From NCBI GenBank assembly GCA_002269645.1, contig NIVC01000162.1, positions 434,001 to 498,000 of the forward strand: DNA of 64,000 nt, written 5' to 3'. The position numbers and the translations under genes are program-made. The notes under the pieces were generated by a model, which did not search any database, had not been told where the DNA came from, and saw nothing but the letters and a program-made list of their open reading frames with translations. The stretch comes from Macrostomum lignano (taxonomy: Eukaryota). Positions 3,111 to 58,200 of the stretch are shown here, in pieces (position 1 is the first letter of the stretch; every line of letters starts with the position of its first letter).

Positions 3111-4795
3111 GCTGATAACAATCGCAAATCACGGGTGCAAATTTCTCTGAAGGCATCTTTTTTATTCTTAGCGCTAGTATTGATAAATCTATCAAAAGTT
3201 TTTACCTTGGGGGGGGGGTGGGGCAGACAAAGAATCTTGCTTATGGCTGCGGGCCAGATGAGAGAAAAAGGAGAGGCGAGAGAGATGGGAGAAGAGCGTG
3301 GAGATGAGATGGAAGGAGAGAAGAGAGGTGAGATGAGATGAGACCAACCTTAAGCGGGCCACATTGCTGTTGCGAAGTTTCAAGAACCCGAAGGCCGGAT
3401 AGAGAGGCTTCGAAGGATGAAGTTTGCCGACCCCTGCACTAAATCTACCATTCACAGAGGCTGCACTCACAAGGTTATCAAGCTGATTTTCGTGAAATTC
3501 TGCCGGAGAAAGGTCCCGGCAAAATTTCAGTTTTTCTTTTTATGTATTTTTTCTAGACAGTTCGACCGGATTTGTCTATGGCAAAACCCTATTCATTGCT
3601 ATGCAGAAAAGTAAATATTCGAGAAATCTTGTCTGGGTATACAAACTACCCGGTACTTCAGACGAAGGTAAATGGCATTTTAAGCAAACTGCAGGTTACT
3701 GTTACTTCAGTCTCTCTGTTCCTCTTTTTAGCTTCATCTCGTTCGAATCAACAAAAACGAGTCCCTCAAAGCCTGAGAGGACTTCGATTTTCCCCATTCA
3801 CCTGACGTCTCCATCGCCTTTGCTATCGACTATTTCTGGCGAGTGCCTGCATGCAATATGATGCAGTTGCAGTGACGCCCTGGCTGGACTGCAGGCTCGC
3901 ATGCTAGCATGTAGACATGTATGTAGTCTGTCAGGAATTGTAGATGAAAATTCACGATTCGCTCAATTTACAACACGCTCAGGTTTCAGTTGCTACTTTG
4001 AAACTTATCTCTATATTCGCTTAGGTATTTTTATCACTGAATTTTATCGTCAAGATGTCACTTGGACAATCCTGCTGCTGAATTGATTGGTCAATCTGGT
4101 CAATATGGCTCCGCTTATCTGCTGGTTACGGATTCATTGTCCTAATCCAGAGCAATAATAATAATAATAGTAGTTACGCCCCACGCCAGCCACAGAAGTG
4201 GCCAAAAGGGGGGAGCGTCAAATCGCGCGTTTCAGAGCTAGGTCTCTAATGTGCTTCACACCGGCCGCCTGGCTGGGTGCTCGCGCATTTTCAAAAAGGC
4301 GGTCGACGTAGCGGGCTGATCGTCCCTGGCCACGCCTGCGCGGTCCCTGCGGGGTCCACAGCAGGACGTCCTGCAGCGGCTCTGGGCAGTAGGCTTCGGC
4401 CCGGATGACATGTCCGGCCAGCCGCAGAGCAACTTTCAGTCACCGTCCGTCCTCGAATCGCATCCGACACTTGTTGTTGAGCTGCTGGCCCTACAAATTC
4501 CTGTAAAAATACTGCAAAAGATGGGTTTGAACACTGTTGCTGAACTGAACCGCTTTAATCCGAACTTTAAAAGGGAGCGTATAGCTCCGATGCGGATTTT
4601 AAGCCTGCAGTAAATGACAGTTTATTTGTCTTAAGAGTTCACAAAGAGAAACAACTTTAGAGAGGACAGTATATGCTATAATACTGGGACACAGTGCAGG
4701 CTGCCAGCAAGTCGCCGATAAATTCAGATCAGAACTTGTTTAGTCCCATATACGCCTGTCTGGCTTGCAAAACTGCAGCAATCCTGCTTAATATA

Positions 4796-5760
4796 TCAAT
4801 CTTGAGTAGGATTTTGAGTGATGTAATCTAAGAAACTCGGATGCATATTGCCATCGAAACGCTTGCCGAACATTCCCCCGTTGAACCGCTTGCCGAACAT
4901 TCCACCGTTGAACCGCTTGCCGAACATTCCACCGTTGAACCGCTTGCCGAACATTCCTCCGTTGAACCGCTTGCCGAACATTACCCCGTTGAACCGCTTG
5001 CCGAACATTCCACCGTTGAACCGCTTGCCGAACATTCCACCGTTGAACCGCTTGCCGAACATTCCACCGTTGAACCGCTTGCCGAACATTCCTCCGTTGA
5101 ACCGCTTGCCGAACATTACCCCGTTGAACCGCTTGCCGAACATTCCACCGTTGAACCGCTTGCCGAACATTCCACCGTTGAACCGCTTGCCGAACATTCC
5201 ACCGTTGAACCGCTTGCCGAACATTCCCCGTTGAACCGCTTGCCGAACATTCCACCGTTGAACCGCTTGCCGAACATTCCACCGTTGAACCGCTTGCCGA
5301 ACATTCCACCGTTGAACCGCTTGCCGAACATTCCACCGTTGAACCGCTTGCCGAACATTCCCCCGTTGAACCGCTTGCCGAACATTCCACCGTTGAACCG
5401 CTTGCCGAACATTCCTCCGTTGAACCGCTTGCCGAACATTCCCCCGTTGAACCGCTTGCCGAACATTCCTCCGTTGAACCGCTTGCCGAACATTCCACCG
5501 TTGAACCGCTTGCCGAACATTCCACCGTTGAACCGCTTGCCGAACATTCCCCCGTTGAACCGCTTGCCGAACATTCCTCCGTTGAACCGCTTGCCGAACA
5601 TTCCTCCGTTAAATTTCTTAACTTGGTTTGCAGCCAACGCCTGCTGTGTCGCATGCTCAGCGTTGTGAGGAATCACTTCAGTGTCCGCTAGCGAACAGAA
5701 TGGAATGGATGCCAAAATGGCAGCTACAGCACCCAGAACAAGTATATGTCGACTAGCCAT
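4796..5760 (-). CDS. neuropeptide precursor (FNGGMF-amide / FNGVMF-amide), single coding exon, one 1-nt deletion at 5226-5229
   Basis: Hydrophobic signal peptide MASRHILVLGAVAAILASIPFCSLA, a KK site, then 28 copies of FNG(G/V)MF-G-KR (amidation Gly plus dibasic cleavage), and tail FDGNMHPSFLDYITQNPTQD-TGA. The array 4859-5613 is 755 nt = 28x27-1. Unit variation is mostly at the third position of the first Gly codon (GGT/GGG/GGA). Confidence 0.87.
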
Positions 5761-6333
5761 GTTTAATCGCGACAGATCGTCTGCAGTCTATGCAGTCTAA
5801 GCCTCTCAATTTGTTGACCATGCTAAGAGCACCAGCTACACTGCATATTTATACGAAAGAGGAATTCAAACCATCTCCTGTCCCACGAGGCATGATTGGT
5901 CGAGCTCCTGCTCAGAATTCTAGTCATTGAGAGCTTATTCGTTACAAGTTACAACCGCTCCGAAATCAGAGTCAGTTATTACTGCCCAAGTTTTCAGTTG
6001 TTGCATGCAATGCGCAGGAAAAAATGAATAAATTTTAAAGCAGGCAAAACGCGATTCTGTCTCAAATATATGCAATTTAGATTAGCACACAGAATTTATA
6101 CAACCATTTTTCTCTCAACTATCGTACGAGTACTTCAACTTTCCTTCCCTGGTGAACGCAACCTAGAAATGGCCAAGATCCATATTTGGGACTCGATGAT
6201 GATGGAAGCGCACGGGAGGAATCGCGCCAGCTTCCTGTCCTGGGGGGACTGCTGAATTGGTGAAAATTAACTTTCGGCACGCAGAGTCTCCAAGATGATA
6301 GTCTAAAAAAGTTTGTTAGTTTTTAAAACAACC

Positions 6334-7325: not shown

Positions 7326-8314
7326 TCAGTAGTAAGGAACAGTGTTTGGCACCACAACAACCGGCACACTGCTGTGGTGCACCACGTAGGCTGACACGCT
7401 GCCCAGCACCGTGCGCCGAACAGTGCCGAGTCCACGGCTACCCACCACCAGGAGGTCCGCGCCTCGATCCTCGGCCAGCTTAACAATGGCCGGGCCGGGA
7501 CCGCCGCAGTATTCGCACAGCCAGCGAGCGTCGGTCAGGTTGTACGGCAGGCACCAGTCGGATGTGACTTTGCGCTCCAGCTGGCGCGCTGAGGCCACTA
7601 TTGAATGCCAGACCTGAGTGTGTCAGATGTGCGGTTGGCATGCGCGCTTTTGGTGGACTGCGTGTGCTTATAGGCTCACCAAGGATGAGGTGCTGTTGCA
7701 GACAGACCATGTGAACCAGCGGCCCTACTATGACCCCTATGACCCGAAGACCCATGGATCTGAAGACTCAATAACCCTATGACCCTGTGATCTGACCACC
7801 CTGTGACCCAGCGGCCCAATGACCCTGTGAACCAGTGGCCTAATGACCTAAGAGTAAGACCCAATGACCCTGTGACTGTGACCTATGACCCTGTAACCCC
7901 ATTACCCTGTGATCCAATGACCCTGTGACCCCATGACTCTGATCTAATTACCAGCTGTGACCCAATCCAATGCCCTATGATCTAACGGCTGTAACCTAGT
8001 ATTTGGCCTACTAGCCACTAGCCAGCACTCATCGATTAAATATATCATATCATATCATATCAATACTCATAGATCGACCTGTCCCCCTCCCCACTCACCT
8101 GACTCGGGTCACTCCACAAGCCCGAAGGTGGCGCTTCGACGTGCAGAAAAGTCACGTGATCGCCCCGTCGATACAGCCGCCGCATGAAGTAGTCGAACGC
8201 CCGCTTAGATTGCTCGCCGCCGTCCACAGCGATGGCGACAACTCGAGATGAGCTGTTGTCGAATTTCTGTTTCTCGCTAACAGCTGTGATTTGCTGTTGC
8301 TGCTCGGGCTCCAT
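7326..8314 (-). CDS. universal stress protein (UspA domain), exons 8314-8099 and 7613-7326
   Basis: [18 protein letters not shown] (USP strand 1/helix 1) and [38 protein letters not shown] (G-2x-G-9x-GS ATP-binding motif). Donor CAG|GTGAGT at 8098 and acceptor CTCAG| at 7614, both phase 0. Confidence 0.92.
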
Positions 8315-9249
8315 GTTCTCGGGTGCTTTGGAACTTAACTTAGACTTAGGAATTTAACTATTTTGTTATTACAGTCAACTCTGGTTAGATTGTTTGTCAC
8401 ACCAACCAAGGGCCAGCCAGACAGAACTGGCCTGCGCTTCTCTATTTAGTTGATTCTAGGGCGTGCATCTTGCTCTGTCTCGTGTGTGGGGTGCCGGCTT
8501 TCTTATCTCTCTGCCGACGCCTGCCCTTGCTAAGTGCGCTTAGAATGTACATTGTCCCGGGCAGTGTACATTATTTTATTAATAGACTTCGACTTTTGCC
8601 TCCAACCCCATTTTTATCGGTTTGGCTGGACGGAAAACAGACCTAGATTAAGGAATGGTTTTTTGCCTTTCTTTTATTAATTATTTGTACTTTTTGACAG
8701 AATACATCGATCATCTTTGATTCTTTGACGTTTGTTATAAAATCACGCAATTTTAGCTGATTATACATTAACTTCCTTTGGTAAATATTAGGACTGCAAA
8801 TGCAACAAGAGTAATATAGCTCGTAAATAAACGAAGCATAAAAATCGTGTTAAAACGCGTTCCTAATTTTGTTTAACGCTTCGCTTATAAATAAATCGCT
8901 TTTAAATTGTTCAGGGAACATTTCAAAGGTGTCTTTGTTTTACCTTTAAAAGTAGAAATACTTTATTTTGATGCATTTTATAGAATATTAACCACACTTT
9001 CAAGCGCAGTATCCTGAGGAAGATAGTAATTGGTTAGTGCCATAAGAGATTAAAACACTGATTTTTTGTATTTAGGATTCTCAAGGAGGTAAATTACATG
9101 CACGAGACATGCTGAGCAAAGCTAATTGGTTAAACAGAAAGTGGCAGAGAGTTACAGAGCGGCTCAGATTGGTGCAGAATCTAATTTTCGTATTCTCAAT
9201 GTGTGCATGCCAAAGCTTGAATTCACTGCAGTTGCAGCTGTCACTAGTC

Positions 9250-11655
9250 CTACATCAGTGTCGACTGGGTCGCTGCAAAGTGACTGTAGGCTGCGAATCC
9301 GGCAGCAGCAGCAGTGATGCAGCCGCCGCTGCCACCGACGCTGCCGTCGTTCCCGTTGACGCCGCCTTGATAGCCCGCAGCAGGGCCGCCGTAGCCGTAG
9401 CCGTAGCCGTAACCATAGCCGTAGCTATAACCGTAGCCTGCCTGCGCCTGGGTCCGATCCCAGCTGCCAAGCTGATGCTGCTGATGTTGCAGCGCCTGCT
9501 GCTGCGGCTGCTGCTGTTCCGCTGGCTGATAGAAACGAGGCAGCTGCTCCTCAGCCTTCGACTGCTCAGCAACCGCGGCCTCGGCTTGAGCAGGTGAATC
9601 AATACCAGCCGCCTTAGGCGCTGCCATCTGCCGCAGCGCCTTCTCCGTTCGTTTCCGCTCCACGATCAGCGCGCAGCCGTCGCATCTGCAGGCCAGGAAC
9701 GGGCAGCGCCGCTTATGACCGCGCCACTCCACTGACAGGCCGTGGTTGCGGCACTTGCGGCAGTGCGCGGTCAACGGCGAGGCTGCTGCTGCTGCTGCTG
9801 ACGACTCGGTCGCAGCATTGGGGTTCGGCGACGCCGAGGTCGGCGGCTGAAGGTCCGGCAGCGCGCCGCGCTGGTCCCTGTACATCGCAATCTGCCTGGC
9901 GACCACCCGGCGACTTCGATCGACCATTCGGCAGGCCTGGCAGCCGCAGGTCAGGTAGGGGCACAGCTTCTTGTGCCGCCGCACCGGGGCTTTGAGGCCG
10001 TGGGCTCGGCACTTGCGGCACAGGTAATCGGACCGAATGCTGCCCCCGCCGCTGCTGGCTGCGTGTTGGATGGCCTCGGTCGAGCTGAAATGGGTCGAGT
10101 TGGAGATTCACTGCAGGTTGATACAGATGAAGATGCTGCAATGTTAGTTGTTTTTTTCAGTAACTTGTCTGTCCCGCAAATCCACTCAATCTCACATTGA
10201 TCCATGATCGCACCCTGAGATTCCCCACTTCACGCACCTACACGCCATCTCAATCCTTTAAGACTCCAAGTAACACGTCAAGCGATCCCCAATCCTAACC
10301 TAATAAGACATCCACAGCCTCACTCCAAGTCTCCAAGATATCTCAAAACACAACTGAAGAGATCCGAACTCTCGCTCCAAGATCCAATACTGAAGGTCCC
10401 AATCTCACCCAAGAGATCCTGATCTCACCCAAGAGATCCTGATCTCACCCAAGAGATCCTGATCTCACCCAAGAGATCCTGATCTCACCCAAGAGATCCT
10501 GATCTCACCCAAGAGATCCTGATCTCACCCAAGAGATCCTGATCTCACCCAAGAGATCCTGATCTCACCCAAGAGATCCTGATCTCACCCAAGAGATCCT
10601 GATCTCACCCAAGAGATCCTGATCTCACCCAAGAGATCCTGATCTCACCCAAGAGATCCTGATCTCACCCAAGAGATCCTGATCTCACCCAAGAGATCCT
10701 GATCTCACCCAAGAGATTCTGATCTCACCCAAGAGATCCTGATCTCACCCAAGAGATCCTGATCTCACCCAAGAGATCCTGATCTCACCCAAGAGATCCT
10801 GATCTCACCCAAGAGATCCCAATCTCACCCAAGAGATCCTGATTTCAGCCAAGAGATCCCAATCTCACCCAAGAGATCCTGATTTCAGCCAAGAGATCCC
10901 AATCTCACCCAAGAGATCCTGATCTCACCCAAGAGATCCCAATCTCACCCAAGAGATCCTGATCTCACCCAAGAGATCCCAATCTCACCCAAGAGATCCC
11001 AATCTCACCCAAGAGATCCTGATCTCACCCAAGAGATCCTGATCTCACCCAAGAGATCCTGATCTCACCCAACAGATCTCAATCCCACTCAAGAGATCCC
11101 AATCTCACCCCAATCTCACCCCAACAGATCTCAATCTCACCCCAGCAGATCTCAATCTCACCCCAGCCGATCCCTATCTCACCCAAAGAGATCCCCAATT
11201 TCACCCAAAGAGATCCACAATCTCACCGAAGAGATCCCGATCTCACCCCAATCTCACTTCAAAATTCCAATGACACACAAATAGATCCCAATCTCACCCA
11301 AAAGATCCCGATCTCACCCAACAGATCCCAATCTCACTGTAGAGGAGACCTATCACACTTGAAGATATCTTTAATCTCATGCTATTAGATCCCAATGTCA
11401 CCTGAAGGGTTAAAAGATTCATTTTCTCATTTCTAAGAGCTGGAATCTCACCCACCTAAGACCCATATCTCAAAATCCACTCGTGCATTAAATTACAATA
11501 AATGAAAAAAATAAATGTATAAAAGCTACTCACTGCACTTCATTTGGTGTTGATGGCGAAGCTTCAGACTTGACAGTGAACAATTCCAAGCTGAACTGCT
11601 GCGGATGCTGGCACTGCTGATGCTGCTGATGCTGGAAGCTGGACTGTTGGTACAT
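9250..11655 (-). CDS. Dmrt/doublesex-mab-3-related transcription factor with two DM domains; exons 11655-11534 and 10084-9250 (~318 aa)
   Basis: DM1 CRKCRAHGLKAPVRRHKKLCPYLTCGCQAC and DM2 CRKCRNHGLSVEWRGHKRRCPFLACRCDGC both fit C2HC-HC3. Exon 1 starts MYQQSSFQHQQ and ends CA|GTGAGT; acceptor TTTCAG|C at 10085. The phase-2 join gives CAC and keeps the frame. Confidence 0.92.
10395..11360. repeat. 20-bp minisatellite GATCTCACCCAAGAGATCCT in intron 1 of the DM gene
   Basis: About 30 near-perfect copies at 10401-11070, degenerating distally. Confidence 0.95.
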
Positions 11656-27219: not shown

Positions 27220-27582
27220 ATGGCTCCGCGTCGGGAAAAGAAAAAGAGCGCCCTGAAGGACGTTGTCACCCGCGAGTACACCATCAACCTGCACAAGCGC
27301 ATTCACGGCATCGGTTTCAAGCGCCGGGCGCCGCGCGCAATGACGGAGATTCGCAAATTCGCGGAGAGAATGATGGGCACCCCGGACGTGCGGCTGGACA
27401 CCAGGCTGAACAAGTTCGTGTGGAGCCAGGGCGTCCGCAACGTGCCGTTCCGCGTCCGGGTCCGCCTGGCCAGGAAGCGCAATGAGGACGAGGACAGCGC
27501 GCACAAGCTGTACACCTTGGTCACCTACGTGCCCTGCACCGAGTTCAAGGGCAAGCAGACCATCAATGTGGAAGGAGAATAG
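27220..27582 (+). CDS. RPL31: 60S ribosomal protein L31 (eL31), no intron in the CDS
   Basis: [64 protein letters not shown]; full length, 120 aa. Confidence 0.97.
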
Positions 27583-27829
27583 TCGGCTAAATTAGAATCT
27601 GTCACCTGGTTCAACTGACGCTTCGCGTGATTTTAGTTGCTAAGCAGTTTCATTAGTGACCCTTATCGTTAATACACTGCCGGACCTGTGTTGCGGATTG
27701 TTAAAGTCCGAATTGGATTGAAATTATTGTACGGCTTTGACCTCATTTATTTCCTATGCGACTAATTCTTTTTGTTGATAGTTAGCGATTAACTGATGCA
27801 GCAGTTTGTTGAGACTCTGCTATTTTATC

Positions 27830-28776
27830 CCAATCACCCTCTCCCGTTGCCCATTTATCCCCATCACTGCCTCCCGTTGCCCATTTATCCCCATCACTGC
27901 CTCCCGTTGCCCATTTATCCCCATCACTGTCTCCCGTTGCCCATTTATCCCCATCACTGTCTCCCGTTGCCCATTTATCCCCATCACAGCCTCCCGTTGC
28001 CCATTTATCCCCATCACTGCCTCCCGTTGCCCATTTATCCCCATCACTGTCTCCCGTTGCCCATTTATCCCCATCACAGCCTCCCGTTGCCCATTTATCC
28101 CCATCACTGTCTCCCGTTGCCCATTTATCCCCATCACAGCCTCCCGTTGCCCATTTATCCCCATCACTGCCTCCCGTTGCCCATTTATCCCCATCACTGT
28201 CTCCCGTTGCCCATTTATCCCGATCACAGCCTCCTTTGATTATGTATCCCCATCACAGCCTCCCTTTGACGATTTATCACCATCACTGCCTCCCGTGGCC
28301 CATTTATCCCCATTGTCTCCATAGTCCCATTTATCCCTATCACAGCCTCCTTTGCCATTCTGCCATATCCCATTGCATTTTGCCACGTCTCATTACTGCC
28401 TCCCTATTCCCGTTTATCCCCATCTCAGCCTCCCTAATCCCGTTTATCCCCATCTCAGCTATCCACTCCGTTTATCCCCATCTCAGCCTCCCTAATCCCG
28501 TTTATCCCCATCTCAGCCCCTTACTCCCGTTTATCCCCATCTCAGCCCCTTACTCCCGTTTATCCCCATCTCAGCCTCCCTAATCCCGTTTATCCCCATC
28601 TCAGCCTCCCTACTCCCGTTTATCCCCATCGCAGCCTCCCTACTCCCGTTTATCCCCATCTCAGCCTCCCTACTCCCGTTTATCCCCATCTCAGCCTCCC
28701 TACTCCCGTTTATCCCCATCTTAGCCTCCCTACTCCCGTTTATCCCCATCTCAGCCCCTTACTCCCGTTTATCCCC
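27830..28776. repeat. two related 30-bp minisatellites (CCATTTATCCCCATCACTGCCTCCCGTTGC; CCCGTTTATCCCCATCTCAGCCTCCCTACT) between RPL31 and RPS21
   Basis: Directly visible; shared TTTATCCCCATC core. Confidence 0.93.
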
Positions 28777-28790
28777 GAGTCTCCCACGCC

Positions 28791-28847
28791 CCGGAAGTCA
28801 GCCGCACCAAATATGGCCCGGGATTTCCTCTCACCTTTGCAGCCGCA
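28791..28847 (+). promoter_or_regulatory. possible ribosomal-protein promoter elements or splice acceptor upstream of RPS21-like
   Basis: CCGGAAGT (ETS-type motif) at 28791-28798, AAATATGGC (YY1-like), then pyrimidine tract TTTCCTCTCACCTTTGCAG. Motif match only. Confidence 0.3.
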
Positions 28848-28872
28848 ATCGTTCAAGCAGCCCATAGCAACA

Positions 28873-29129
28873 ATGGAGCACTCATTTATCCCACGCAAAT
28901 GCGACGCGACCCAGCGCATCATCGGCCGAAGGACCACGCCTCCATCCAGCTGGCCTTCGCCGAGTTGAACGCTGACGGCCGCATGACCGGCGGCAAGAAG
29001 GTGTTCAACATCAGCGGCGACGTGCGGCGACGCGGCGAGAGCGACATGTCTCTGAATGTGCTGACTAGCGAGCGAGGCATCACCGCCCCGTTCCTGCTCA
29101 AGCTGGACGAGACCAACCGCACGGCCTGA
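28873..29129 (+). CDS. RPS21: 40S ribosomal protein S21 (eS21)-like, divergent, 1-nt deletion at ~28926
   Basis: MEHSFIPRKCDATQRIIG, then a 1-nt shift to PKDHASIQLAFAELNADGRMTG..ISGDVRRRGESDMSL; matches the eS21 motifs PRKC, IIxAKDHASIQ and RRxGESD. Confidence 0.88.
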
Positions 29130-29881
29130 GCATTGTGGCTGATGAACTCAAGACTGACAGACTTCTGTCATTGTCTAACGAGATGCTTTAGTAGTTTAAC
29201 AACTTGAATGCGTTTGGTGTGAAAATAAAAGCACTGAAGGGTTTCTCAATGCGCTGATTCTTTGTGCGGATTACCGTGGATTAATGACGGTGTCTGAGTC
29301 TTGCTTGCTTTTTCTAATTGGATTCTAGATTTAGGATTTTTTAAAATTAGATTTTTCTCATTTGGTTTTACAATCCCCAAATTTTCAAAATCTCAAGCTG
29401 CTGGATTTTTTTATCCCTAAATTTCCCAAATCCCATTCTTTTAAATCCATAAATTTTCCAAATTATCCATCCTTTAAATCCCCTAAAATTCCCCACATCC
29501 CTATCCCTTAAAGTCCCTAAAATTCCCAAATTTCCTAAATCTCTATCCTTTTAAATCCCAAATTTCCCAAATCTCTATCCCCTTCAATTCCAAAGGGCCT
29601 GTCAACTTAAGCTCATAAAGTGGAGCCCGAGTAACCTAGGTACACAAATGATATGTCATTCGGCTCATAGTGACACCAGGAAGCTGATTTTTGGCAAAAG
29701 AGCAACAAAAATCAGACCTGGGATAACGGGAGAACAAGCAAGAGGATAAGAAGGCAGACTTTTCGGCCTACTTTTGTTTTCTTATCGCATAAAAATCGAG
29801 CGAAATTCGATAGTTGCTTACTGAAATCACGTCAGTAGGGTGGCTTGAACATGACAAGCTAAAATTACGCTCAGCAAATAA

Positions 29882-31136
<1,255 letters not shown>

Positions 31137-46200: not shown

Positions 46201-49200
46201 CTGTGCCTTGTCCGTGCCTTGTCTGTGCCTTGTCCGTGCCTTGTCCGTGCCTTGTCTGTGCCTTGTCCGTGCCTTGTCCGTGCCTTGTCTGTGCCTTGTC
46301 TGCGTCTTGTCCGTGTCTTGTCTGTGCCTTGTCTGTGCCTTGTCTGTGCCTTGTCTGTGCCTTGTCCGTGCCTTGTCTGTGCCTTGTCCGTGCCTTGTCT
46401 GTGCCTTGTCCGTGCCTTGTCTGTGCCTTGTCCGTGCCTTGTCTGTGCCTTGTCCGTGCCTTGTCCGTGCCTTTTCTCTTGCAAACTTTTTGTCTTTTTC
46501 ATGCTTCCTGTTTTAGTCCCCTGTCCCCCTGTGTCCCCTGTCCCTGTCCCATGTCCCCAGCCGCACCGGATCGGTCAGGGCATCAGCTGGCGATCGGAAC
46601 GGTTTGGCCCGCAGCATCCGGTGCTCCATCAGCGGCAGAGCCACCCAGGTGAGCTCGGTGGTTAGCGACGAAGAGAATCGACTGCTGGCCCTGGCGCTGG
46701 AGACGTCGATCTCGGACAAGTGCAGCGAGTTGCTGCAGTGGCGAGGAGGGGGTCGGGGGTTCGAGTTTTGTAGGGAAGAGACAGGAGAGATGGCGAATTA
46801 GAGCCGCACCTTCTGCTTCCGGTTGCTTGGGCGGCCTCGGGCTCTCGCGCCGCCTGCCGGGCACCCCGCGGCGCCGCCTGGGCCTGAGCGGGCGACGGCG
46901 CGCGCCTGGAGCCGCCTGTTGAGGCGGCCGCTGCGGCCGGTTTTGGGTGCACATCGATGTTGAACTTGGAGCCTGCGCGGGAGCTGCAATAGAAATCGGT
47001 GGCAGATTGATAAGATAGCAGACACCCCAGGGGAAATACCGGACACCCTAGAGATCGCGGACACGACTGGTGAAATACCGGACAGCCTAGATATCGGACC
47101 CCCAGGTAAAATACCGGACACCTTAGAGATTCCGGACACCCAAGGTGAAATACTGGACACCCAAGGTGAAATACCGGACACCCTAGGTGGAAATACCGGA
47201 CACCCTAGAGATAACGGACACCCCAGGTAAAATACCGGACACCTTAGAGATACCGGACACCCTAGGTGAAATACCGGACACCCCAGGTGAAATACCGGAC
47301 ACCCTAGAGATCGCGGACACCCCAGATAAAATACCGGACAACCCAGGTGAAATACCGGACACCTTCGTAAAATACCGGACACCCTAGAGATAGCGGACAC
47401 CCCAGGTGAAATACTGGACACCCTAGGTGAAATACCGGACACTCTAAAGATATCGGACATCCTAGGTGAAATACCGGACACACTAGAAATAGCGGATACC
47501 CCAAGTGAAATACCGGACACTCTAGAGACATCGGACACCGAGGTGAAATACCGGACACCTACGTAAAATACCGGACACCCTAGAGATAGCGGACACCCCA
47601 GGTGAAATACTGGACACTTAGAGATATCGAACATCCTAGAGATAGCGGACACCCTAGATGAAATACCGGACACCCCAGGTGAAATACCGGACACCCTAGA
47701 GATCGCGGCCACCCAACAAAAGCAACAGCAAGCCAAACAAAAGCTGACCCCATATGCTGCACCAGCTGGTTCAGGCAGTTTAGACAGGCGGTCTGCTGCA
47801 GCTCCATCCTCTGGCCCAGCCTCCGCACTTCCTCTTGCAGTCCGTCGACCCGCTCAGACAATCCGACGCATCTCTCGTCAACATCGTCAATTCGACGCAG
47901 CTGCTTCTCGGTGTCGCGGAGACCCTCGCGGATTCGAACCCGGACCACCGAGTGCATGGTGTCCCAGTCCATGGACTGGGCGGCGGCTGCCGCGGCTGCC
48001 GCGGCCGCAGCGACCGCCGATGCGGTGTTTTCGGTAGTGCCGGCAGCCGACTGCGACGGCAGCTGCAGCTGGCGGCGACCTGCCGGGTCTGATGCATTCG
48101 CTCGCCGGCGCTGCTGATTGGCCTCCTGGCGACGGCGGAGGAACTCCTGCGAGCGGAGGCCCTCCCACTTGGTCAGCTGCTCCTCGCTCACGGCGGAGTC
48201 GCCCACGATGCAGCCTTGTAGGGGGGAGTGATCAGGTGTTTGTGAGCAGGCTGGAGTGATCTGTGTTTGTGAGCAGGCTGGAGTGATCTGTGTTTGTGAG
48301 CAGGCTGGAGTGATCTGTGTTTGTGAGCAGGCTGGAGTGATCTGTGTTTGTGAGCAGGCTGGAGTGATCTGTGTTTGTGAGCAGGCTGGAGTGATGTGTG
48401 TTTGTGAGTAGGCTGGGGTGATCTGTGTTGGTGAGCAGGCTGGAGTGATCTGTGTTGGTGAGCAGGCTGGAGTGATCTGTGTTTGTGAGCAGGCTGGAGT
48501 GATCTGTGTTGGTGAGCAGGCTGGAGTGATCTGTGTTGGTGAGCAGGCTGGAGTGATCTGTGTTTGTGAGCAGGCTGGAGTGATCTGTGTTGGTGAGCAG
48601 GCTGGGGTGATCTGTGTCTGTGAGTAGGCTGGGGTGATCTGTGTCTGTGAGTAGGCTGGGGTGATCTGTGTCTGTGAGTAGGCTGGGGTGATCTGTGTCT
48701 GTGAGTAGGCTGGGGTGATCTGTGTTTGTGAGTAGGCTGGAGTGATCTGTGTTTGTGAGCAGGCTGGGGTGATCTGTGTTGGTGAGCAGGCTGGGGTGAT
48801 CTGTGTCTGTGAGTAGGCTGGAGTGATCTGTGTCTGTGAGCAGGCTGGGGTGATCTGTGTCTGTGAGTAGGCTGGAGTGATCTGTGTTGGTGAGCAGGCT
48901 GGAGTGATCTGTGTTTGTGAGCAGGCTGGAGTGATCTGTGTTGGTGAGCAGGCTGGGGTGATCTGTGTCTGTGAGTAGGCTGGGGTGATCTGTGTCTGTG
49001 AGTAGGCTGGGGTGATCTGTGTTTGTGAGTAGGCTGGAGTGATCTGTGTTTGTGAGCAGGCTGGGGTGATCTGTGTTGGTGAGCAGGCTGGGGTGATCTG
49101 TGTCTGTGAGTAGGCTGGAGTGATCTGTGTCTGTGAGCAGGCTGGGGTGATCTGTGTCTGTGAGTAGGGGTTATGGGGGGAGTCATTTGGTGTCTGTGAG

Positions 49201-52200
49201 CAGGGGCTGTAGGAGCAAGAGCAGCATGAACACACAATGAGACATTTCTGACTAGTGAACTCACGCAAAAATCCTCGAAAATCTGAAATTGTGGTAGTGT
49301 AAGTATATTGTATTAAATAGGTAATAAAAATCTGATATCCATAATTCCCATGAAATTTGATTCCAACTCACTGATACGACACATGAACGGATCTGTTTCA
49401 AATTGGATCCGCCTGCGACGCACACCTAGATAAATTAGCAGAGCCAGATTCCACAGCAGCGACAGAGGCGGCGGCGCAATGCTGCGCTCGGTGTACTCGC
49501 GCATGATTAAGTAGCGCTGTAGAGTCCAGTACTGCATAGAGGAGCTCTGGATGCGCTCGTACGTGTTGCTGGAATGTCATTTGGGTCTCAATGTGCACTC
49601 TGTCGGGGTGGGGTGGGGGTGAGGGTTCCAATGTACACACTTTCTATCCCTCTGTCTGGTTAGTGCGCGGTGAGGGTGAGGGTTTCACTGTACACTCTTT
49701 CTATCCCTCTGTCTGGTTAGTGCGCGGTGAGGGTGAGGGTTTCACTGTACACTCTTTCTATCCCCCTGTCTGGTTAGTGCGCGTTGAGGGTGAGGGTTTC
49801 ACTGTACACTCTTTCTATCCCCCTGTCTGGTTAGTGCGCGTTGAGGGTGAGGGTTTCACTGTACACTCTTTCTATCCCTCTGTCTGGTTAGTGCGCGGTA
49901 AGAATGGGAGCTTCGATCTGAAATTTCGAGCTTGTGAAAGCGACCGGTGGAGAGGGTGGAGTTAAAAAGTAAACATTCAAAGACACTCACGCAAACATGG
50001 CAATTAGCAAGTTGAGAAGCAGCACATTCGTAAAGACTATGTAGAATCCCAATAGGACTGGCGCGATGTAGCGGCCCCAGGAGTCTGGACAGCCGGTCAT
50101 GTTTAGCCTGCAGGCGTCCGCTGAAAATATGATAAAATTTCTATGGCTTATGAAAATTTTAGAAACGATACGAAAACATCGGGGTCAGGCTGGTACAACG
50201 GGGTCAGGAGATGAGACCATACTGTCAGTACATGAGACCATCAGGTCAGGACATGTACTGTCAGGAGATGACGAATCAGTGAGTCAGTTGTCGCCAGCAG
50301 CTGAGGTCCAGATTCGAACTTACACAGCGTGGAAACTGAAAACGAGTCAAATCGAAGTGATTGAGTTTATTTTTACGGTGCCACAGAAGCCGAATTATTT
50401 AATTTGCGGAAAATCTGCTCTCAAGCTCTCACCTTCGCCGCTGATGTAGCCAACTTGTAGTTCGCCAAATGACTCAAAGTAAGCCAGCTTGAGCAGGCTC
50501 ATCACAGCGTCCATCGCTCCGCCCATGTCCGGCGTGGACATTGGGAACATTGTGCTCCACACAAACACTCCGTAGCCAACAACAAAGACCATGAATATGA
50601 CCATGAACGGGATGAGGTCCTCAATGATCTGGTTGGAGATGTGCGGGATTTGAGGCGATCAGTTTGAGTCATAGGCCTTCATTTGTCGTGTGATCTAATA
50701 GTCTAATCTGGATGATGACTCACTAATGATCTGGATGATGACTCACTAATGATCTGGATGATGACTCACTAATGATCTGGATGATGACTCACTAATGATC
50801 TGGATGATGACTCACTAATGATCTGGATGATGACTTACTAATGATCTGGATGATGACTCACTAATAATCTGGATGATGACTCACTAATGATCTGAATGAT
50901 GACTCACTAATGATCTGGATGATGACTCACTAATGATCTGGATGATGACTCACTAATAATCTGGATGATGACTCACTAATGATCTGGATGATGACTCACT
51001 AATGATCTGGATGATGACTTACTAATGATCTGGATGATGACTTACTAATGATCTGGATGATGACTCACCAATGACTCACCACTGTCTAACCAATGACTCA
51101 CCACTATCTAACCAATGACTCACCACTGTCTAACCAATGACTCACCACAGTCTAACCAATGACTCACCATGGTCTGAATCATGACCACCTTTGGCCCCAG
51201 GTTGACATGCACGGAGAAGTTCTGCAGCAGTCGGCAGAAATAGAAGAACAGCGCCAGGCCCAGCAGGATCCGGCAGATTCGCATCATCTTCACGGAGCCG
51301 GTGTCCAGTGCACTGCCCGAGGTGTCCACGCCGAAGATGGAGTCAGGCAGGCCGGGCACGAACCGCAGACCAAACACGATGGCAGCAAGAGTGAAAATCG
51401 CCATTGAGGCAAAGTCCATCAGGTTCCAGCCTTTAGCCAGGTGGCCAGCAACTGACTCGCCGCTCACCAGCAGCTGCTTCACGGCTTCAACCATGAAGGA
51501 CAGCACGAAAACGGCTAGCAGCAGCTGTAGTGGGTTCCACGACTGAGTGGCGTTGCCCACCGTGAATAGAAGGACGTACGAGTACAAGCATAGGAAGCCT
51601 GCGTAAGCAACCTGCGAGTTGGGGAGCGGCGATTGGCTCTCTGCGTAGATCCAGCTGATTGGCTCTTCTCTCCCCAACTCAATGCTGATTGGCTCTTCTC
51701 TCCCCAACTCGATGCTGATTGGCTCTTCTCTCCCCAACTCGATGCTGATTGGCTCTTCTCTCCCCAACTCGATGCTGATTGGCTCTTCTCTCCCCAACTC
51801 GATGCTGATTGGCTCTTCTCTCCCCAACTCGATGCTGATTGGCTCTTCTCTCCCCAACTCAATGCTGATTGGCTTTGCTCTTCCTAACTCGATGCTGATT
51901 GGCTCTTCTCTCCCCAACTCGATGCTGATTGGCTCTTCTCTCCCCAACTCAATGCTGATTGGCTTTGCTCTTCCTAACTCGATGCTAATGGGCTCTTTTC
52001 TCCCCAACTCGATGCTGATTGGCTCTTCTCTCCCCAACTCGATTCTGATTGGCTCCGTACTTACTGTAAGTACTAAGTACAAACTCATAAATCTGTAAAA
52101 GGCCAGCCCAGCCGCATGCGCTCACCGAGGTGTACAGAAAGCGCACCATAGGCGTGGCGTAGAAGTCGTAGGTGTCGCAGACCATCCTGCTGCACAGGCC

Positions 52201-55200
52201 GCGCCGCTGCTCTGACGACTTTGGCTTTGCGGCGACGTTCGCAGCTCCGCTGCCCGGCTTTTGCTCTTCCAACGGCAAGGCCGAGGATTCCTGCTGAGAT
52301 TTTGCACGCGTTGTAGTCGTACATAAACTTCCATTTCTAACAGTGTTCTCCATTTTCTTGACTTTATCCATTTCAACCCAATTCTCCCGATGTCTACCCG
52401 ATTCTCCCGATGTCTACCCGATTCTCCCGATGTCTACCCGATTCTACCGATGTCTACCCGATTCTCCCGATGTCTACCCGATTCTCCCGATGTCTACCTG
52501 ATTCTCCCGATGTCTACCCGTTCTCCCGATGTCTACCCAATTCTCCTGATGTCTACCCAATTCTCCCGATGTCTACCCAATTCTGCCGATGTCTACCCGA
52601 TTCTCCCGATGTCTACCCAATTCTCCCGATGTCTACCCAATTCTGCCGATGTCTACCCAATTCCCAAAATTCTTTCGACTTTCCTCTGCACCCAATCATC
52701 CCCACGTCCCCACCAGCTCTCACCTGATGGTTCCCACCGTCTCTGCGGCCGCCCGGCCGCCGAACCAGCAGCTGCAGCAGCGGCCCCACAAACCAGGGTG
52801 CTGAGCAGCCAACAAGGCCGACCAGCAGGAACTGCAGTCCGCTCAGGTGACCGACAATCCGGCCGCGCCACATCATGTCGAGCAGATTCTGGCAGCTGGG
52901 ATGCGCGATGAAGCTCAGCGAAGTGCCCTCGGCGGCCAGCTCGAAGGAGGTCGCCCCGCCGAAGGTGTGCAGCCGCCTGACAACCGTCATGCTGGCCAGG
53001 CGGGCCTCCTCAGCCCAGCAGTCATTGAGTACTTCGACAGCGAGCTGCTCGAAGCGGGCGGCCTGCAGGTCGAGCTCCGCCCGCATCTGCACGCTGTCGC
53101 AGCAGGCCCGGGCCCGCCGGAGCACCAGGGCGGCCAGCAGAGCGGACGGGATGATCTCGCGCTGGTGCAGGCAGAAGGCCTGGGCGAGGCCGAACCGGCC
53201 AGTCAGCAGGCACCACAGGGTGGCCCGCAGGCCGCCGGACAGGCCGGATTCGATGAGGTGGCCGGGCCGGGTCAGCAGGTGCACCGCGGCCTCGACGTCA
53301 GCCTGGTTGACCGTGTGGCTGGTGCTAGCCGAGCTGGGAGAGGCTCTGGACCCGCTGCGCTTGGCCACCAGGCGCTTGAAGATGCCGCAGCTCTGGTGGG
53401 TTGGGTGGGTTGGGTGGGTTGGGTGGATTGTGGATTGGGTGGTTTGGGTGGGTTGGGTGGATTGGGGGGATGGGTGGGTTGGGTGGGTTGGGTGGATTGT
53501 GGATTGGGTGGGTTGGGTGGGTTGGGTGAATTGTGGATTGGGTGGCTTGGGTGGGTTGGGTGGGTTGGGTGGATTGTGGATTGGGTGGGTTGGGTGGATT
53601 GGGAGGGATGGGTGGGTTGGGTGGGTTGGGTGGATTGTGGATTGGGTGGGTTGGGTGGATTGTGGATTGGGTGGGTTGGGTGGGTTTTGAGGGTTAATGG
53701 GTGACTTTAGATCAGGTCAGTAAAATCCTTACAAAGTCCTCCGCCATGGACATGCCGTACAGCTCCAGCATCAGCGAGTCCTTCACGTAGGCGTTCAAGC
53801 TGAAGCCCTGCTCCACCATCAGCTCGGCGAACTCCGTCTGGTTGTCCCGCAGAGCCTGCAGCATCAGTGGCTCCAGGTCGTTTTGCTGGAGTGGCGGCGG
53901 GTTGAAGAATGTTTGCATCCGCCCCCGATCCTAATTCTCATCCGCCCCCGATCCTAATTCTCATCCGCCCCGATCCTAATTCACATCCGCCCCCGATCCT
54001 AATTCTCATCCGCTCCTAGTTAGTATCTTTATCCGCCCCTAGTTAGTATCTTTATCCGCCCCTAGTTAGTATCTTTATCCGCCCCTAGTTAGTATCTTTA
54101 TCCACTCCTAATTAGTATCTTTATCCACTCCTAATTAGTATCTTTATCCACTCCTAATTAGTATCTTTATCCACTCCTAGTTAGTGTCTTTATCCGCCCC
54201 TAGTTAGTGTCTTTATCCGCCCCTAGTTAGTGTCTTTATCCGCCCCTAGTTAGTATCTTTATCCGCCCCTAGTTAGTATCTTTATCCGTCAATAGTTAGT
54301 ATCTTTATCCGTCAATAGTTAGTATCTTTATCCACCCCTAATGAGTATCTTTATCCGCTCCTAGTTAGTATCTTTATCCATCCCTAATGAGTATCTTTAT
54401 CCGCTCCTAGTTAGTATCTTTATCCACCCCTAATGAGTATCTTTATCCGCTCCTAGTTAGTGTCTTTATCCACCCCTAATGAGTATCTTTATCCGCTCCT
54501 AGTTAGTGTCTTTATCCACCCCTAATGAGTATCTTTATCCGCTCCTAGTTAGTATCTTTATCCACCCCTAATGAGTATCTTTATCCGCTCCTAGTTAGTA
54601 TCTTTATCCACCCCTAATGAGTATCTTTATCCGCTCCTAGTTAGTATCTTTATCCGCCCCTAATGAGTATCCAGATCCGCCCCTAATGAGTATCAGCTCA
54701 CAGTCCATTTCTTGGCATCCGTGAGGATCTTAGTCCTAGCAATGTCGCAGCGATCGATGGACATTGCGATGCGCAGCTGGTCCACATTCAAGACCTCCGA
54801 GTCTTCGCCCGCGGCTTTTTCGCCGTTGCCGCCGGCGTCGTCTCCTGCAGACTGCGGCATTCCCAGCAGCGAGGCGAGAATCTTGGCGTCGAAGTCGGAT
54901 GCCATGTCGTCCTCGACTGAGAACACCTCGATGAGGTGCTGCGCGGCGGCGATCTCCATCAGCATGGAGACCTCCGGCTTCGGGGCCTCCTGATCGCCGC
55001 AGAGCCATTTCTGCAGCGTCACGCTGGCGAGGACCTCCGGGCTGGCGGTGCGCAGAGCCGGATTGTCGATGCGAATCTCGCCGCTCAGCAGGTCAAGCAG
55101 GTAGCAGACCGCGTCGGCCAGGCCGCCGGAGCCGCGAACCAGCACAGCGGAGCAGTGGCGGAGCACCAGGCATCTGGATGGCGGCGGGCGGTAATAGACA

Positions 55201-58200
55201 TTATAGTATTTTCGGGGATTCCAAGAGAGAACCCGAATTTTATAAATAGAAACACGGGAGTTCTATAGTCAGTATCCAGAATATCCAATCAGAGTCAAGA
55301 GGAGTGCTATAAATAGAAACACGGAGTTTTCTATTCATTATCCAGTCTATCCAATCAGATTCAAGTGGGGAGCTATAAATAGAAACAAAGAGTTATTTAG
55401 CTCAGTTTAGTCAGCTCAGTTTTTATTTAGTCAGTATCCAGCCTATCCAATCGTAGTCAAGTGGAAAAGCTAAAAATAGAAACGCGGGAATCCCTAGCAA
55501 ATGTTCAATCAGATGAAAAGTCTGCAAGTATGAAAAGGCTTGAGAATTTAATTCAACGAATATGGAGCTCGATATGTAGCTCAACAAACCTATGCAGGCT
55601 GGCCACATCGTCCAGCGTTCCGTTGGCCAGAATGCAGCAGGCCGGCGCCTGCGGCATCGATTCGTCTAAGCGGCTGAGCAGGGTTTCAATTCGAGTTCGA
55701 ACTTCAACTACCGTGTCGGTCTCGGCGTTGTCGTCGACCATCAGGAAGAAGTTGTGGTTGGGATCAAGGCCAGGCAAAGATCCTGGCACGGCTGGCGGTG
55801 GCTGGTTTGATAAGCCCTGTTTGTTTGAAGTTTAAAAATATAATTTCTTACATTTCTACTTTCAGTAGTTTAATAGGTATTTTTCAGATTTTTAAATTAG
55901 CAATTATATAAAAGGAAACATTGTAATAAAAATTCAATGCTGACCGCAAAGTCTTTGCTGACTAGTTCGGAACGCGAAGGCACCCATTTCCATGGCAACA
56001 CTGCCAGCAGGCTGATCCTATCCTGTCCGTAGGCGTCATTGTAGTCTCTGACCGCCTTGCCAGCCAGTTTAACAATGCCTTTGCTCAGGCCGTCCGTCAC
56101 CACCAGAGAGTCTAAGTAAGGAAATTGAAAGAGATATTGGGCCTGGGGAATCTGTGCAAAGGTTTCAGGGAGACTGTGTCCGCTTGGTCCTTCAATCGTG
56201 TAAGCTACAGGGAGACTGTGTCCGCTTGGTCCTTCAATCATGTAAGCTACAGGGAGACTGTGTCCGCTTGGTCCTTCAATTATGTAAGCTAGAGGGAGAC
56301 TGTGTCCGCTTGGTCCTTCAATTATGTAAGCTACAGGGAGACTGTGTCCACTTGGTCCTTCAATTATGTAAGCTACAGGGAGACTGTGTCCGCTTGGTCC
56401 TTCAATCATGTAAGCTACAGGGAGACTGTGTCCGCTTGGTCCTTCAATTATGTAAGCTAGAGGGAGACTGTGTCCGCTTGGTCCTTCAATTATGTAAGCT
56501 ACAGGGAGACTGTGTCCACTTGGTCCTTCAATTATGTAAGCTACAGGGAGACTGTGTCCGCTTGGTCCTTCAATTATGTAAGCTACAGGGAGACTGTGTC
56601 CACTTGGTCCTTCAATTATGTAAGCTACAGGGAGACTGTGTCCGCTTGGTCCTTCAATCATGTAAGCTAGAGGGAGACTGTGTCCACTTGGTCCTTCAAT
56701 TATGTAAGCTACAGGGAGACTGTGTCCGCTTATTCCTTCAATCATGTAAGCTACAGGGAGACTGTGTCCACTTGGTCCTTCAATTATGTAAGCTACAGGG
56801 AGACTGTGTCCGCTTGGTCCTTCAATCATGTAAGCTACAGGGAGACTGTGACCACTTGGTCCTTCAATTATGTAAGCTACAGGGATTCTGTCCTTCAGGC
56901 AACTGAGTCTCACTTGAGCAGCCGGCCGCCTTCCAGAAGCCCTTCATAAAGACTTTGTTAAAGTCGGTGCGGGTTGACTGCCCGCCCAAGACCGTCACAA
57001 TCATGGAGGGTTGCTGGATGCCCCAGACTTTGTGCAGCAGCCACAACAGCTGGGCATCTTCGGTGAAGCTGGAGATGCGGACGAACTTCGCAAGGAGGAA
57101 ACGGGGATTTGCGATGGTTCAATTGCAGCTGCAGGCAGAATAAACATTGAAAAGTGCACACACTGCACACACTGCACACACTGAACACTGCACACACTGC
57201 ACACACTGCACACTGCACACACTGCACACACTGCACACACTGCACACTGCACACACTGCACACAGTTCACACACTGCACACTGCACACACTGCACACTAC
57301 ACACACTGCACATACTGCACACTGCACACACTGAGCACACTGCACACTACACACACTGCACACACTGCACACTGCACACTGCACACACTGCACACTGCAC
57401 ACAATGCACACTGTACACACTGCACACACTGCACACAATGCACACAATGCACACTGCACACTGCACACACTGCACACACTGAGCACACTGCACACACTGC
57501 ACACTACACACACTGCACATACTGCACACACTGCACACACTGCACACTGCACACACTGAGCACACTGCACACTGCACACACTGCACACACTGCACACTGC
57601 ACACTGCACACACTGCACACTGCACACAATGCACACTGCACACACTGCACACACTGCACACAATGCACACAATGCACACTGCACACTGCACACACTGCAC
57701 ACACTGAGCACACTGCACACACTGCACACACTGCACACTGCACACACTGAGCACACTGCACACTGCACACACTGCACACACTGCACACTGCACACTGCAC
57801 ACACTGCACACTGCACACAATGCACACTGCACACACTGCACACACTGCACACAATGCACACAATGCACACTGCACACACTGCACACACTGAGCACACTGC
57901 ACACTACACACACTGCACATACTGCACACTGCACACACTGAGCACACTGCACACACTGCACACTGCACACTGCACACACTGCACACTGCACACACTGCAC
58001 ACTGCACACTGCACACACTGCACACACTGAGCACACTGCACACACTGCACACACTGAGCACACTGCACACACTGCACACACTGCACACTGAGCACACTGC
58101 ACACACTACACACACTACACACACTGCACACACTGAGCACACTGCAGACAATGCACACTACACATACTGCACACACTGCACACACTGCACACTGCACAAA

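Follow-up and report, generated by a model that had tools for sequence, protein, structure and literature searches.

The 64,000 nucleotides (nt) of the flatworm Macrostomum lignano analyzed here (contig NIVC01000162.1, positions 434,001 to 498,000 of the forward strand; referred to as the window) belong to the assembly Mlig_3_7 (GCA_002269645.1, NIVC01), with 100% identity to the contig and with their RPL31 ORF mapping to the same assembly, and at 5760-4796 on the minus strand they carry a gene in which a 27-nt unit, encoding the hexapeptide FNGGMF and a subsequent Gly-Lys-Arg, is tandemly repeated. The gene very probably encodes a genuine precursor of an amidated multi-copy peptide, and the product, FNGGMFamide, may well belong to the SIFamide/NLP-10 peptides of protostomes. 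Mlig_3_7 represents the M. lignano line DV1; it is a Canu assembly of PacBio reads that underwent Pilon polishing, its annotation derives from a genome-guided transcriptome, and simple and tandem repeats constitute 15% of the M. lignano genome (PMC5730564). An earlier note on this DNA had placed the gene at 4796-5760, which turned out to be exact for the minus strand (ATG 5760-5758, TGA 4798-4796), and the described succession of signal peptide, KK, GKR-flanked units, and acidic tail was recovered in full on translation. The features of the gene, including an open reading frame (ORF) that is interrupted within the array and products given in amino acids (aa), are:

5847..5853, minus strand: candidate TATA box TATAAAT, 93 nt upstream of the ATG (pattern scan; putative promoter element)
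5686..5760, minus strand: ATG and predicted 25-aa signal peptide MASRHILVLGAVAAILASIPFCSLA, likely cleaved between SLA and DT
5614..5685, minus strand: spacer propeptide DTEVIPHNAEHATQQALAANQV followed by the dibasic KK (translation; identical in all three genomic copies)
5236..5613, minus strand: units 1-14, 14 x FNGGMF-GKR in frame with the ATG (unit parsing; ORF 5116-5760)
5210..5235, minus strand: unit 15, 26 nt, with a 1-nt deletion that shifts the frame (unit parsing)
5116..5118, minus strand: stop codon that ends the shifted frame and the 214-aa product (ORF listing and translation)
4859..5209, minus strand: units 16-28, 11 x FNGGMF-GKR and 2 x FNGVMF-GKR, in frame only with the deletion repaired
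4796..4858, minus strand: acidic C-terminal tail FDGNMHPSFLDYITQNPTQD, which begins with a degenerate unit, and TGA (translation)
4621..4626, minus strand: putative AATAAA poly(A) signal, which follows the stop codon at a distance of 170 nt (pattern scan)

The ATG at 5760 is the first one downstream of in-frame stops, and the sequence encoded from there up to the array is a KK-terminated N-terminus of 49 aa (MASRHILVLGAVAAILASIPFCSLADTEVIPHNAEHATQQALAANQVKK). The predicted signal peptide has a basic n-region (R4, H5) and a hydrophobic core of 13 residues (residues 5-17, Kyte-Doolittle 9-mer means 2.1-2.8), and a heuristic check found the small residues at positions −3 and −1 that make up the S-L-A cleavage-type site. 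Tandem Repeats Finder (TRF) scored a single array at 4856-5610 (period 27, 28.0 copies, 96% matches, no indels scored), and unit-by-unit parsing resolved it into 28 units at 5613-4859, namely 25 intact FNGGMFGKR, two FNGVMFGKR, and the 26-nt unit 15. The FNGVMF variants are unit 19 (5128-5102) and unit 24 (4993-4967), each with a GGA to GTA exchange, and in unit 15 (5235-5210) a GGGGGA run reads GGGGA and is 1 nt short. In the sequence as assembled, the frame of the ATG is lost in this unit and ends at 5116, which gives a product of 214 aa that retains 14 FNGGMF-GKR behind the signal peptide, with both FNGVMF units and the tail left out of frame. The count of 26 FNGGMF and two FNGVMF copies in the earlier note thus holds once the frame is restored, but as assembled there are 14 in-frame copies and FNGVMF would remain untranslated. 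A KK precedes unit 1 and G-K-R follows each of the 28 units, and the same is seen in two paralogs with 15 and 31 units. Rfam gave no match anywhere in the window.

These paralogs are found on two further contigs, and all three loci are syntenic, with a Usp-domain gene upstream in each of them. The three arrays compare as follows:

NIVC01000162.1 (window): 28 units; deletion in unit 15
NIVC01001722.1: 31 units; units 15 and 23 both with this deletion
NIVC01000127.1: 15 units; intact 615-nt ORF, 204 aa

All 15 units of NIVC01000127.1 encode FNGGMF, and the tail of this copy differs at two residues (P to S, L to F). A confirmed frameshift without any intact allele had been named in advance as a finding that would speak against the gene; instead, one copy of 204 aa with 15 perfect units is intact, and the two frameshifted copies would still yield 14 units each. 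Because Mlig_3_7 holds three paralogous subgenomes (S, L1, L2) of a highly inbred line, with three-copy blocks covering about 70% of the assembly (PMC10733133), the three gene copies are most likely subgenome paralogs and not alleles. About 700 nt upstream are 98-100% identical across the three loci, and beyond about 900 nt upstream of the ATG, NIVC01001722.1 is unalignable with the other two copies. As the flanks, too, are 98-100% identical, a comparison of coding and flanking divergence between the paralogs is uninformative. The upstream neighbor, a Usp gene (PF00582), lies directly next to the precursor at about 7326-8314 (minus strand) of the window and at 4884-5889 (L005) and 7428-8432 (L007) of the paralogous loci.

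With respect to the deletion in unit 15, we lean toward a mutation that is real and not a consensus error caused by the context, as judged from the sequence of the three copies, because it recurs in two contigs, was apparently copied with a duplicated block, and unit 10 is intact in the same context. Unit 23 of NIVC01001722.1 sits in an extra block of three units that resembles a duplication of units 15-17, and unit 10, which matches unit 15 in its G-run and in the units next to it, is intact in the window contig as well as in NIVC01001722.1. The deletion may nevertheless represent a PacBio homopolymer error that short-read polishing left unfixed within the repeat. Gly to Val, which alone among the unit variants is non-synonymous, occurs solely downstream of the frameshift in both frameshifted copies (in NIVC01001722.1 it affects units 19 and 27), and it is absent from the intact paralog. 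This placement fits the relaxed constraint that is expected after a real frameshift, albeit with small numbers.

An open array is by itself a poor indication of a gene in this genomic environment. TRF lists 94 rows for the window, which correspond to about 45 distinct minisatellite arrays with periods of 4-188 that occupy about half of the sequence, many of them within introns of real genes, in keeping with the published repeat share of 15%, and because other arrays with periods of 3n in the window are also open, the openness of a 27-nt array alone means little. More informative is the variation among the units. The 71 full-length units of the three genomic copies show six variant types, and five of these are synonymous in the peptide frame, as compared to 0-4 in the other five frames. 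With a synonymous share of 17/81 among the possible substitutions, this corresponds to a binomial P of 0.002, and the statement that the unit-to-unit changes are mostly synonymous can thus be upheld in terms of variant types. Together with the 15 identical peptides of the intact paralog, this pattern speaks for purifying selection on the peptide. The precursor array is set apart from the neighboring minisatellites by its gene signals, the GKR in each unit, the synonymous variation, a transcript-derived model, and a match to a peptide family. A non-coding minisatellite would be recognized by the lack of frame-specific constraint, of gene signals, and of a transcript model, and the precursor array has such constraint, such signals, and such a model. 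Layout, intact paralog, synonymous pattern, and transcript-derived model agree with the core of the earlier reading, a secreted multi-copy precursor with Gly-Lys-Arg-flanked peptides.

The gene is already present in GenBank, although in a mis-modeled form. It is annotated as BOX15_Mlig004279, a 'hypothetical protein' of 114 aa, which was detected with a de-repeated query. The frame-restored query of 321 aa, when searched against an index of 5.8 billion proteins, had produced 4198 candidates of which none scored, as the 28 repeats evidently defeat the composition correction of HMMER, and a de-repeated query of 87 aa was therefore used instead, which recovered both 114-aa proteins in GenBank and UniProt (Mlig004279 g2/g4, PAA64743.1 and PAA89184.1, UniProt A0A267ET66; g1, PAA90071.1, UniProt A0A267GVM4). 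An exact look-up of the 214-aa ORF as assembled found it not to be on record, and the searchable literature contained no relevant paper on Mlig004279. All three GenBank proteins agree with the gene in the window in their N-terminus, repeat unit, and tail, but they contain just 5 units. The annotated range of Mlig004279 covers the full 965 nt, and the model omits 620 nt, which is the length of 23 units minus 1 nt. A real intron behind the five-unit annotation is excluded: none of the 128 single-gap placements that are compatible with the annotated protein in the window has GT..AG ends, and the same is true for both other loci (128-140 placements over the three loci). Because no GT-AG intron can yield it, the 114-aa protein is an artefact of a repeat-collapsed transcript that was aligned to the genome, and not a spliced product. 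The earlier expectation that gene predictors would stumble over the repeat was thus borne out, with 5 of the 28 units retained in the GenBank model. These transcript-derived models also indicate, indirectly, that a transcript with the N-terminus, unit, and tail of Mlig004279 was assembled.

The earlier note had not recognized the peptide as one of a named family. The name FNGGMFamide is indeed absent from the searchable literature (about 8.3 million papers), as are the strings FNGGMF, NGGMF, and GGMFamide, but the peptide does have close matches in NLP-10/SIFP-1 and SIFamide. An exhaustive phmmer search over 1.84 billion representative proteins mostly returned unrelated tandem-repeat proteins, and among the matches were also two precursors with …PFSGGMY-GKR and …PFSGGVY-GKR, one of them from the nematode Mesorhabditis. 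A profile made from these precursors and the flatworm protein had 77 matches, nearly all of them nematode nlp-10, including 'CBR-NLP-10' and the NLP-10 of C. elegans. The latter reads KR-AIPFNGGMY-GKR-STMPFSGGMY-GKR…AAIPFSGGMY-GKR…GAMPFSGGMY-GR, and FNGGMF is therefore one residue away from the core FNGGMY of AIPFNGGMYamide. One match of 154 aa with a typical nlp-10 layout (P0051; ENA ERZ23140454, ERZ23140456, ERZ23184192; contigs of 514-595 nt) even carries the exact FNGGMF core three times (…LPFNGGMF-GKR, …IPFNGGMF-GKR, and …MPFNGGMF-G). A position matrix for the nlp-10 core was then used, which was built without the flatworm protein and without P0051. In the 282 GG-core peptides from 74 precursors, each residue of FNGGMF is found at its position, the first F in 62%, N in 13%, both G in 100%, M in 28%, and the last F in 8.5%, and FNGGMF reaches 16-17 bits, a random P of ~1e-6 under a random model of proteome composition that is optimistic for Gly/Phe-rich neuropeptides. 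The core FNGSIF of the arthropod SIFamides reaches 6.5-8 bits in the same matrix (P ~1e-4).

In Haemonchus contortus, the amidation of the nlp-10 peptides AVMPFSGGLYa and SPMPISGGIFa was verified by mass spectrometry (PMC8153747). NLP-10 of C. elegans is the cognate ligand of NPR-35, a Gq-coupled receptor of the NPFF/SIFamide family, which speeds locomotion when the animals escape from blue light or a tap and increases the pumping of the pharynx (PMC11532408; PMC11004728). The SIFamide of Drosophila is AYRKPPFNGSIFa (PMC4022047), and GPCRs (G protein-coupled receptors) of the SIFamide type are described as general in lophotrochozoans (PMC8557429), and one was also recovered in a monogenean flatworm (PMC9645230). 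A flatworm ligand for such a receptor was not found in the open literature. The hexapeptide conforms to the pattern aromatic/hydrophobic-[NS]-G-[GS]-hydrophobic-[FY]-NH2, and by a modest balance of the sequence comparisons we favor an assignment of FNGGMFamide to the protostome SIFamide / NLP-10 (SIFP-1) type with its core [FY]-[NS]-G-[GS]-hydrophobic-[FY]-NH2. It may represent the first sighting of a SIFamide/NLP-10-type ligand in flatworms.

With the nematode NLP-10/SIFP-1 precursors, the flatworm gene shares the multi-copy organization, the signal peptide, the G-K-R after each unit, and the C-terminal core [FY]-[SN]-G-G-hydrophobic-[YF]-NH2, and both lack a Cys-pair domain (two or more Cys occur in 2 of the 74 nematode precursors). 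In contrast, the nematode peptides have 9-12 residues, (M/I/L)P is conserved ahead of their core, variable residues separate the units, and the final copy usually lies at the extreme C-terminus, where the flatworm gene has an acidic non-peptide tail; as only the repeat motif can be aligned, orthology is unproven. In the case of the arthropod SIFamides, FNGSIF-NH2 and FNGGMF-NH2 are identical at four of six positions with two conservative changes, and the amidated Phe and the G-K-R are likewise shared, but there the signal peptide is immediately followed by a single 12-residue peptide, two Cys lie in a further, C-terminal peptide (Tribolium), and the precursor has no tandem repeats. The spiralian SIFamide/FFamide precursors (Platynereis SIFamide-1/2, the nemertean 'SIFamide/FF peptide', mollusc FFamide) come from the same super-phylum, and their peptides have the amidated Phe, an Asn at −5/−4, and a hydrophobic residue at −2, but they end in …NSLFFa, …NNLLFa, or …SNLFFa without any GG, and two peptides are combined with a Cys-pair domain. 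Other spiralian multi-copy precursors, such as those of PxFVamide, LASGLI/Vamide, and RGWamide (including P0013, P0014, and P0025), resemble the flatworm gene in having a signal peptide and many short tandem GKR-flanked peptides, but their motifs are unrelated and none has 15-31 perfectly identical units. The profile search also returned rotifer precursors (P0098 and P0094, from Brachionus calyciflorus and a JGI relative) that have an N-terminal part rich in Cys and four or five units of the type LPFE[AT]LNY-GKR, and which may be gnathiferan relatives of this peptide type or chance similarities.

Several points weigh against an assignment to the SIFamide/NLP-10 type. The family link rests on a motif of six residues, and short amidated peptides converge easily. 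The HMMER E-values had to be set aside for the motif analysis, as unrelated tandem-repeat proteins outscore the nlp-10 matches, and the phmmer matches with better E-values include GIWamide-, PxFVamide-, and LASGLIamide-type families and bacterial RFNRGMF repeats. The units are bare hexapeptides between KR sites that lack a Pro-bearing N-terminal extension (PPF, MPF, IPF), the precursor does not have the canonical SIFamide/FFamide layout of one or two peptides after the signal peptide and a Cys-pair domain, and its 15-31 contiguous copies exceed the range of 1-8 copies (median 4) in nematode nlp-10. Spiralian SIFamide/FFamide peptides (…NSLFFa, …NNLLFa), with their weak matrix scores, are less similar to FNGGMFa than the ecdysozoan peptides, and because of this lower resemblance it is conceivable that M. 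lignano may have a separate canonical FFamide-type gene. The planarian prohormone catalogue (main text and available supplements) contains no GGMF-, GGLF-, GGIF-, GGVF-, or GGMY-type peptide, and de-repeated, phmmer, or profile protein searches found no orthologue in other flatworms. Moreover, two of the three gene copies are frameshifted.

The main rival to the SIFamide/NLP-10 assignment is convergence, in which case FNGGMFamide would be a multi-copy neuropeptide restricted to Macrostomum or flatworms that arrived independently at the NLP-10/SIFamide core and acts on another GPCR or on a peptide-gated DEG/ENaC channel. The layout, the copy range, the missing Pro-bearing extension, the differing spiralian FFamides, the lack of a planarian counterpart, and the fact that matches outside M. 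lignano concern only the repeat motif are all compatible with this, and lineage-specificity is common among spiralian multi-copy peptides (PMC8557429). We still consider convergence unlikely, if by no means negligible, in view of the 16-17 bits in the nlp-10 matrix (the P of ~1e-6 being optimistic in the sense given above), the identity of the P0051 hexapeptide, and the single-residue difference to C. elegans NLP-10, and as flatworms have the receptor family for which the literature gives no flatworm ligand. Nematode contamination or transfer was rejected, given that flatworm genes surround the gene on each of three syntenic contigs of M. lignano. That the product is secreted and processed in the same way but is non-neural, serving in gland, epidermis, reproduction, or antimicrobial defense, would agree with the many lineage-specific secreted proteins of M. 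lignano and with the lack of a Pfam or PDB relative, where the searches returned nothing beyond Gly-repeat noise below the threshold (prion octapeptide, FG nucleoporin, actinohivin). However, the GKR in each unit, a hexapeptide held constant by synonymous variation, and near-identity to nematode neuropeptides verified by mass spectrometry are neuroendocrine hallmarks, which makes a non-neural role improbable.

The earlier note had pointed to a loose likeness to tachykinins and buccalins, and FNGGM does resemble the FSGGL of buccalins and the FxGxM of tachykinins, so that a buccalin/allatostatin-A-type (F-x-G-G-L-amide) or tachykinin-type (F-x-G-x-M-amide) peptide had to be weighed. These families are, however, defined by the amidated residue (Leu in buccalins and allatostatin-A, Met or Arg in tachykinins), and here it is an additional Phe that bears the amide; furthermore, the matching nematode peptides activate the SIFamide-type NPR-35, and the allatostatin-A-type receptor NPR-9 is still an orphan. 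The likeness did not survive, as the C-terminus is a Phe-amide and the cores of both families do not score in the nlp-10 matrix, and we regard such a membership as very improbable. For tachykinins, rejection follows from the F that comes after F-N-G-G-M and before the Gly donor, and the core FYGLMM reaches about −2 to +2.6 bits; for buccalin/allatostatin-A, the C-terminus is M-F-NH2, and the core AFSGGL aligned at the C-terminus gives −10 to −21 bits. SALMFamides (S-x-L/F-x-F-NH2) were rejected as well, as position −5 is not Ser and position −3 is neither Leu nor Phe (NSALMF, −1 to −7 bits), and M. lignano was not specifically stained by a SALMFamide S2 antiserum (PMC5947262). One nematode nlp-10 homologue is automatically named 'Allatostatin' in UniRef (P0043, Heligmosomoides polygyrus), which could be taken to favor the allatostatin-A side, and another one is named 'Cholecystokinin' (P0074, Globodera pallida); given the NLP-10/NPR-35 pairing, both names look wrong. 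The least probable alternative, which the data have largely refuted already, is that the locus is a pseudogene in decay, or a minisatellite whose ORF arose by chance. It could draw on the abundance of minisatellites in the window with their other open 3n arrays, and on the 1-nt deletions in two of three copies, but one paralog is intact, the frameshifted copies retain the signal peptide and 14 units, and synonymous variation, promoter and poly(A) signals, the transcript-derived model, and the match to a peptide of a known family all contradict it.

Prohormone convertases cleave at dibasic sites, carboxypeptidases trim the remaining basic residues, and peptidylglycine alpha-amidating monooxygenase (PAM) amidates exposed Gly residues. 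From this established biochemistry, we infer the following route for the product of Mlig004279, which would be an intronless, transcribed gene, present as one of three subgenome copies, for a secreted prohormone. After signal peptidase had acted, prohormone convertases would cleave the KK and KR sites, an E-type carboxypeptidase would remove the basic residues, and PAM would convert the exposed Gly into the C-terminal amide. The predicted outcome is a large number of identical FNGGMF-NH2 molecules (the intact paralog would supply 15 and the window copy, as assembled, 14; predicted monoisotopic [M+H]+ 671.297), with two by-products, an N-terminal spacer of 22 residues and an acidic peptide from the C-terminus. 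Neuronal expression and receptor pairing are suggested by the likeness to known peptides: FNGGMF-NH2 would be released from neurons and act via a flatworm orthologue of the NPFF/SIFamide-type GPCR that is known as NPR-35/SIFR-1 and couples to Gq in C. elegans. The copy number (15, 28, 31) would shift by unequal crossing-over of the 27-nt unit, and selection would hold the peptide constant.

These considerations bear on the evolution of the SIFamide family across protostomes. The core F-N-G-(G/S)-hydrophobic-(F/Y)-amide could be ancestral for protostomes, with the FFamides of annelids, molluscs, and nemerteans being derived, the multi-copy Cys-free precursor being no peculiarity of nematodes, and the dosage being set by unequal exchange—a scenario to which we would give a little less than an even chance. 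If it is true, neuropeptide dosage (15, 28, and 31 copies in three young subgenomes) evolves in this coding minisatellite of 27 nt by the unequal exchange that also populates the genome with non-coding satellites. If the family link should be convergent, the gene would still be a clean case of an amplified lineage-specific neuropeptide whose copy number differs between young subgenomes. Neuropeptide-receptor pairs of flatworms are mostly undefined, and peptide GPCRs are sought as anthelmintic targets; FNGGMFamide is an easily synthesized hexapeptide with a specific predicted receptor clade. SIFamide/NPFF-type signaling is a system conserved among bilaterians; in nematodes it affects locomotor arousal, escape, and feeding, and M. 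lignano, with RNA interference, transgenesis, and its transparent body, makes the role of such signaling in flatworms directly testable. The databases require a correction, as the 114-aa GenBank/UniProt protein is a collapsed form of precursors of 204 aa and more, and repeat-rich prohormones are systematically mis-modeled in the M. lignano genome.

Further features of the window concern other genes and repeats. A DM-domain (doublesex/mab-3-type) exon at 9250-9984 (minus strand), about 3.5 kb from the precursor, matches the DM domain of Pfam twice (E 1.2e-19) and includes a GY repeat that is coding (TRF 9388-9438). A second 27-nt array, with 35 copies and 94% matches, occupies 48225-49168 within an ORF of 562 aa at 47580-49268 (minus strand) and encodes an SQTQITPAC/Y nonapeptide repeat that runs on into non-repetitive coiled-coil-like sequence, and the match of this ORF to the Pfam Spt5 C-terminal nonapeptide repeat (E 5.5e-10) is perhaps compositional. 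At 51120-56913 (minus strand) there is a TRPM-like channel gene with a Pfam TRPM2-like domain (52613-53368) and a SLOG-in-TRPM domain (55897-56913). It contains two open 3n minisatellites in frame with adjacent exon-like sequence, one of 30 nt at 51654-52055 ('ELGREEPISI') and one of 42 nt at 56166-56885 ('VAYIIEGPSGHSLP'), which may be intronic repeats that are open by chance or repeat insertions in the protein. On the plus strand, a housekeeping cluster at 27220-30397 comprises RPL31 (27220-27582, a single 120-aa ORF), RPS21, and NAC-alpha, with a 30-nt minisatellite at 27824-28750 between RPL31 and RPS21, and this cluster is kept on NIVC01000127.1.

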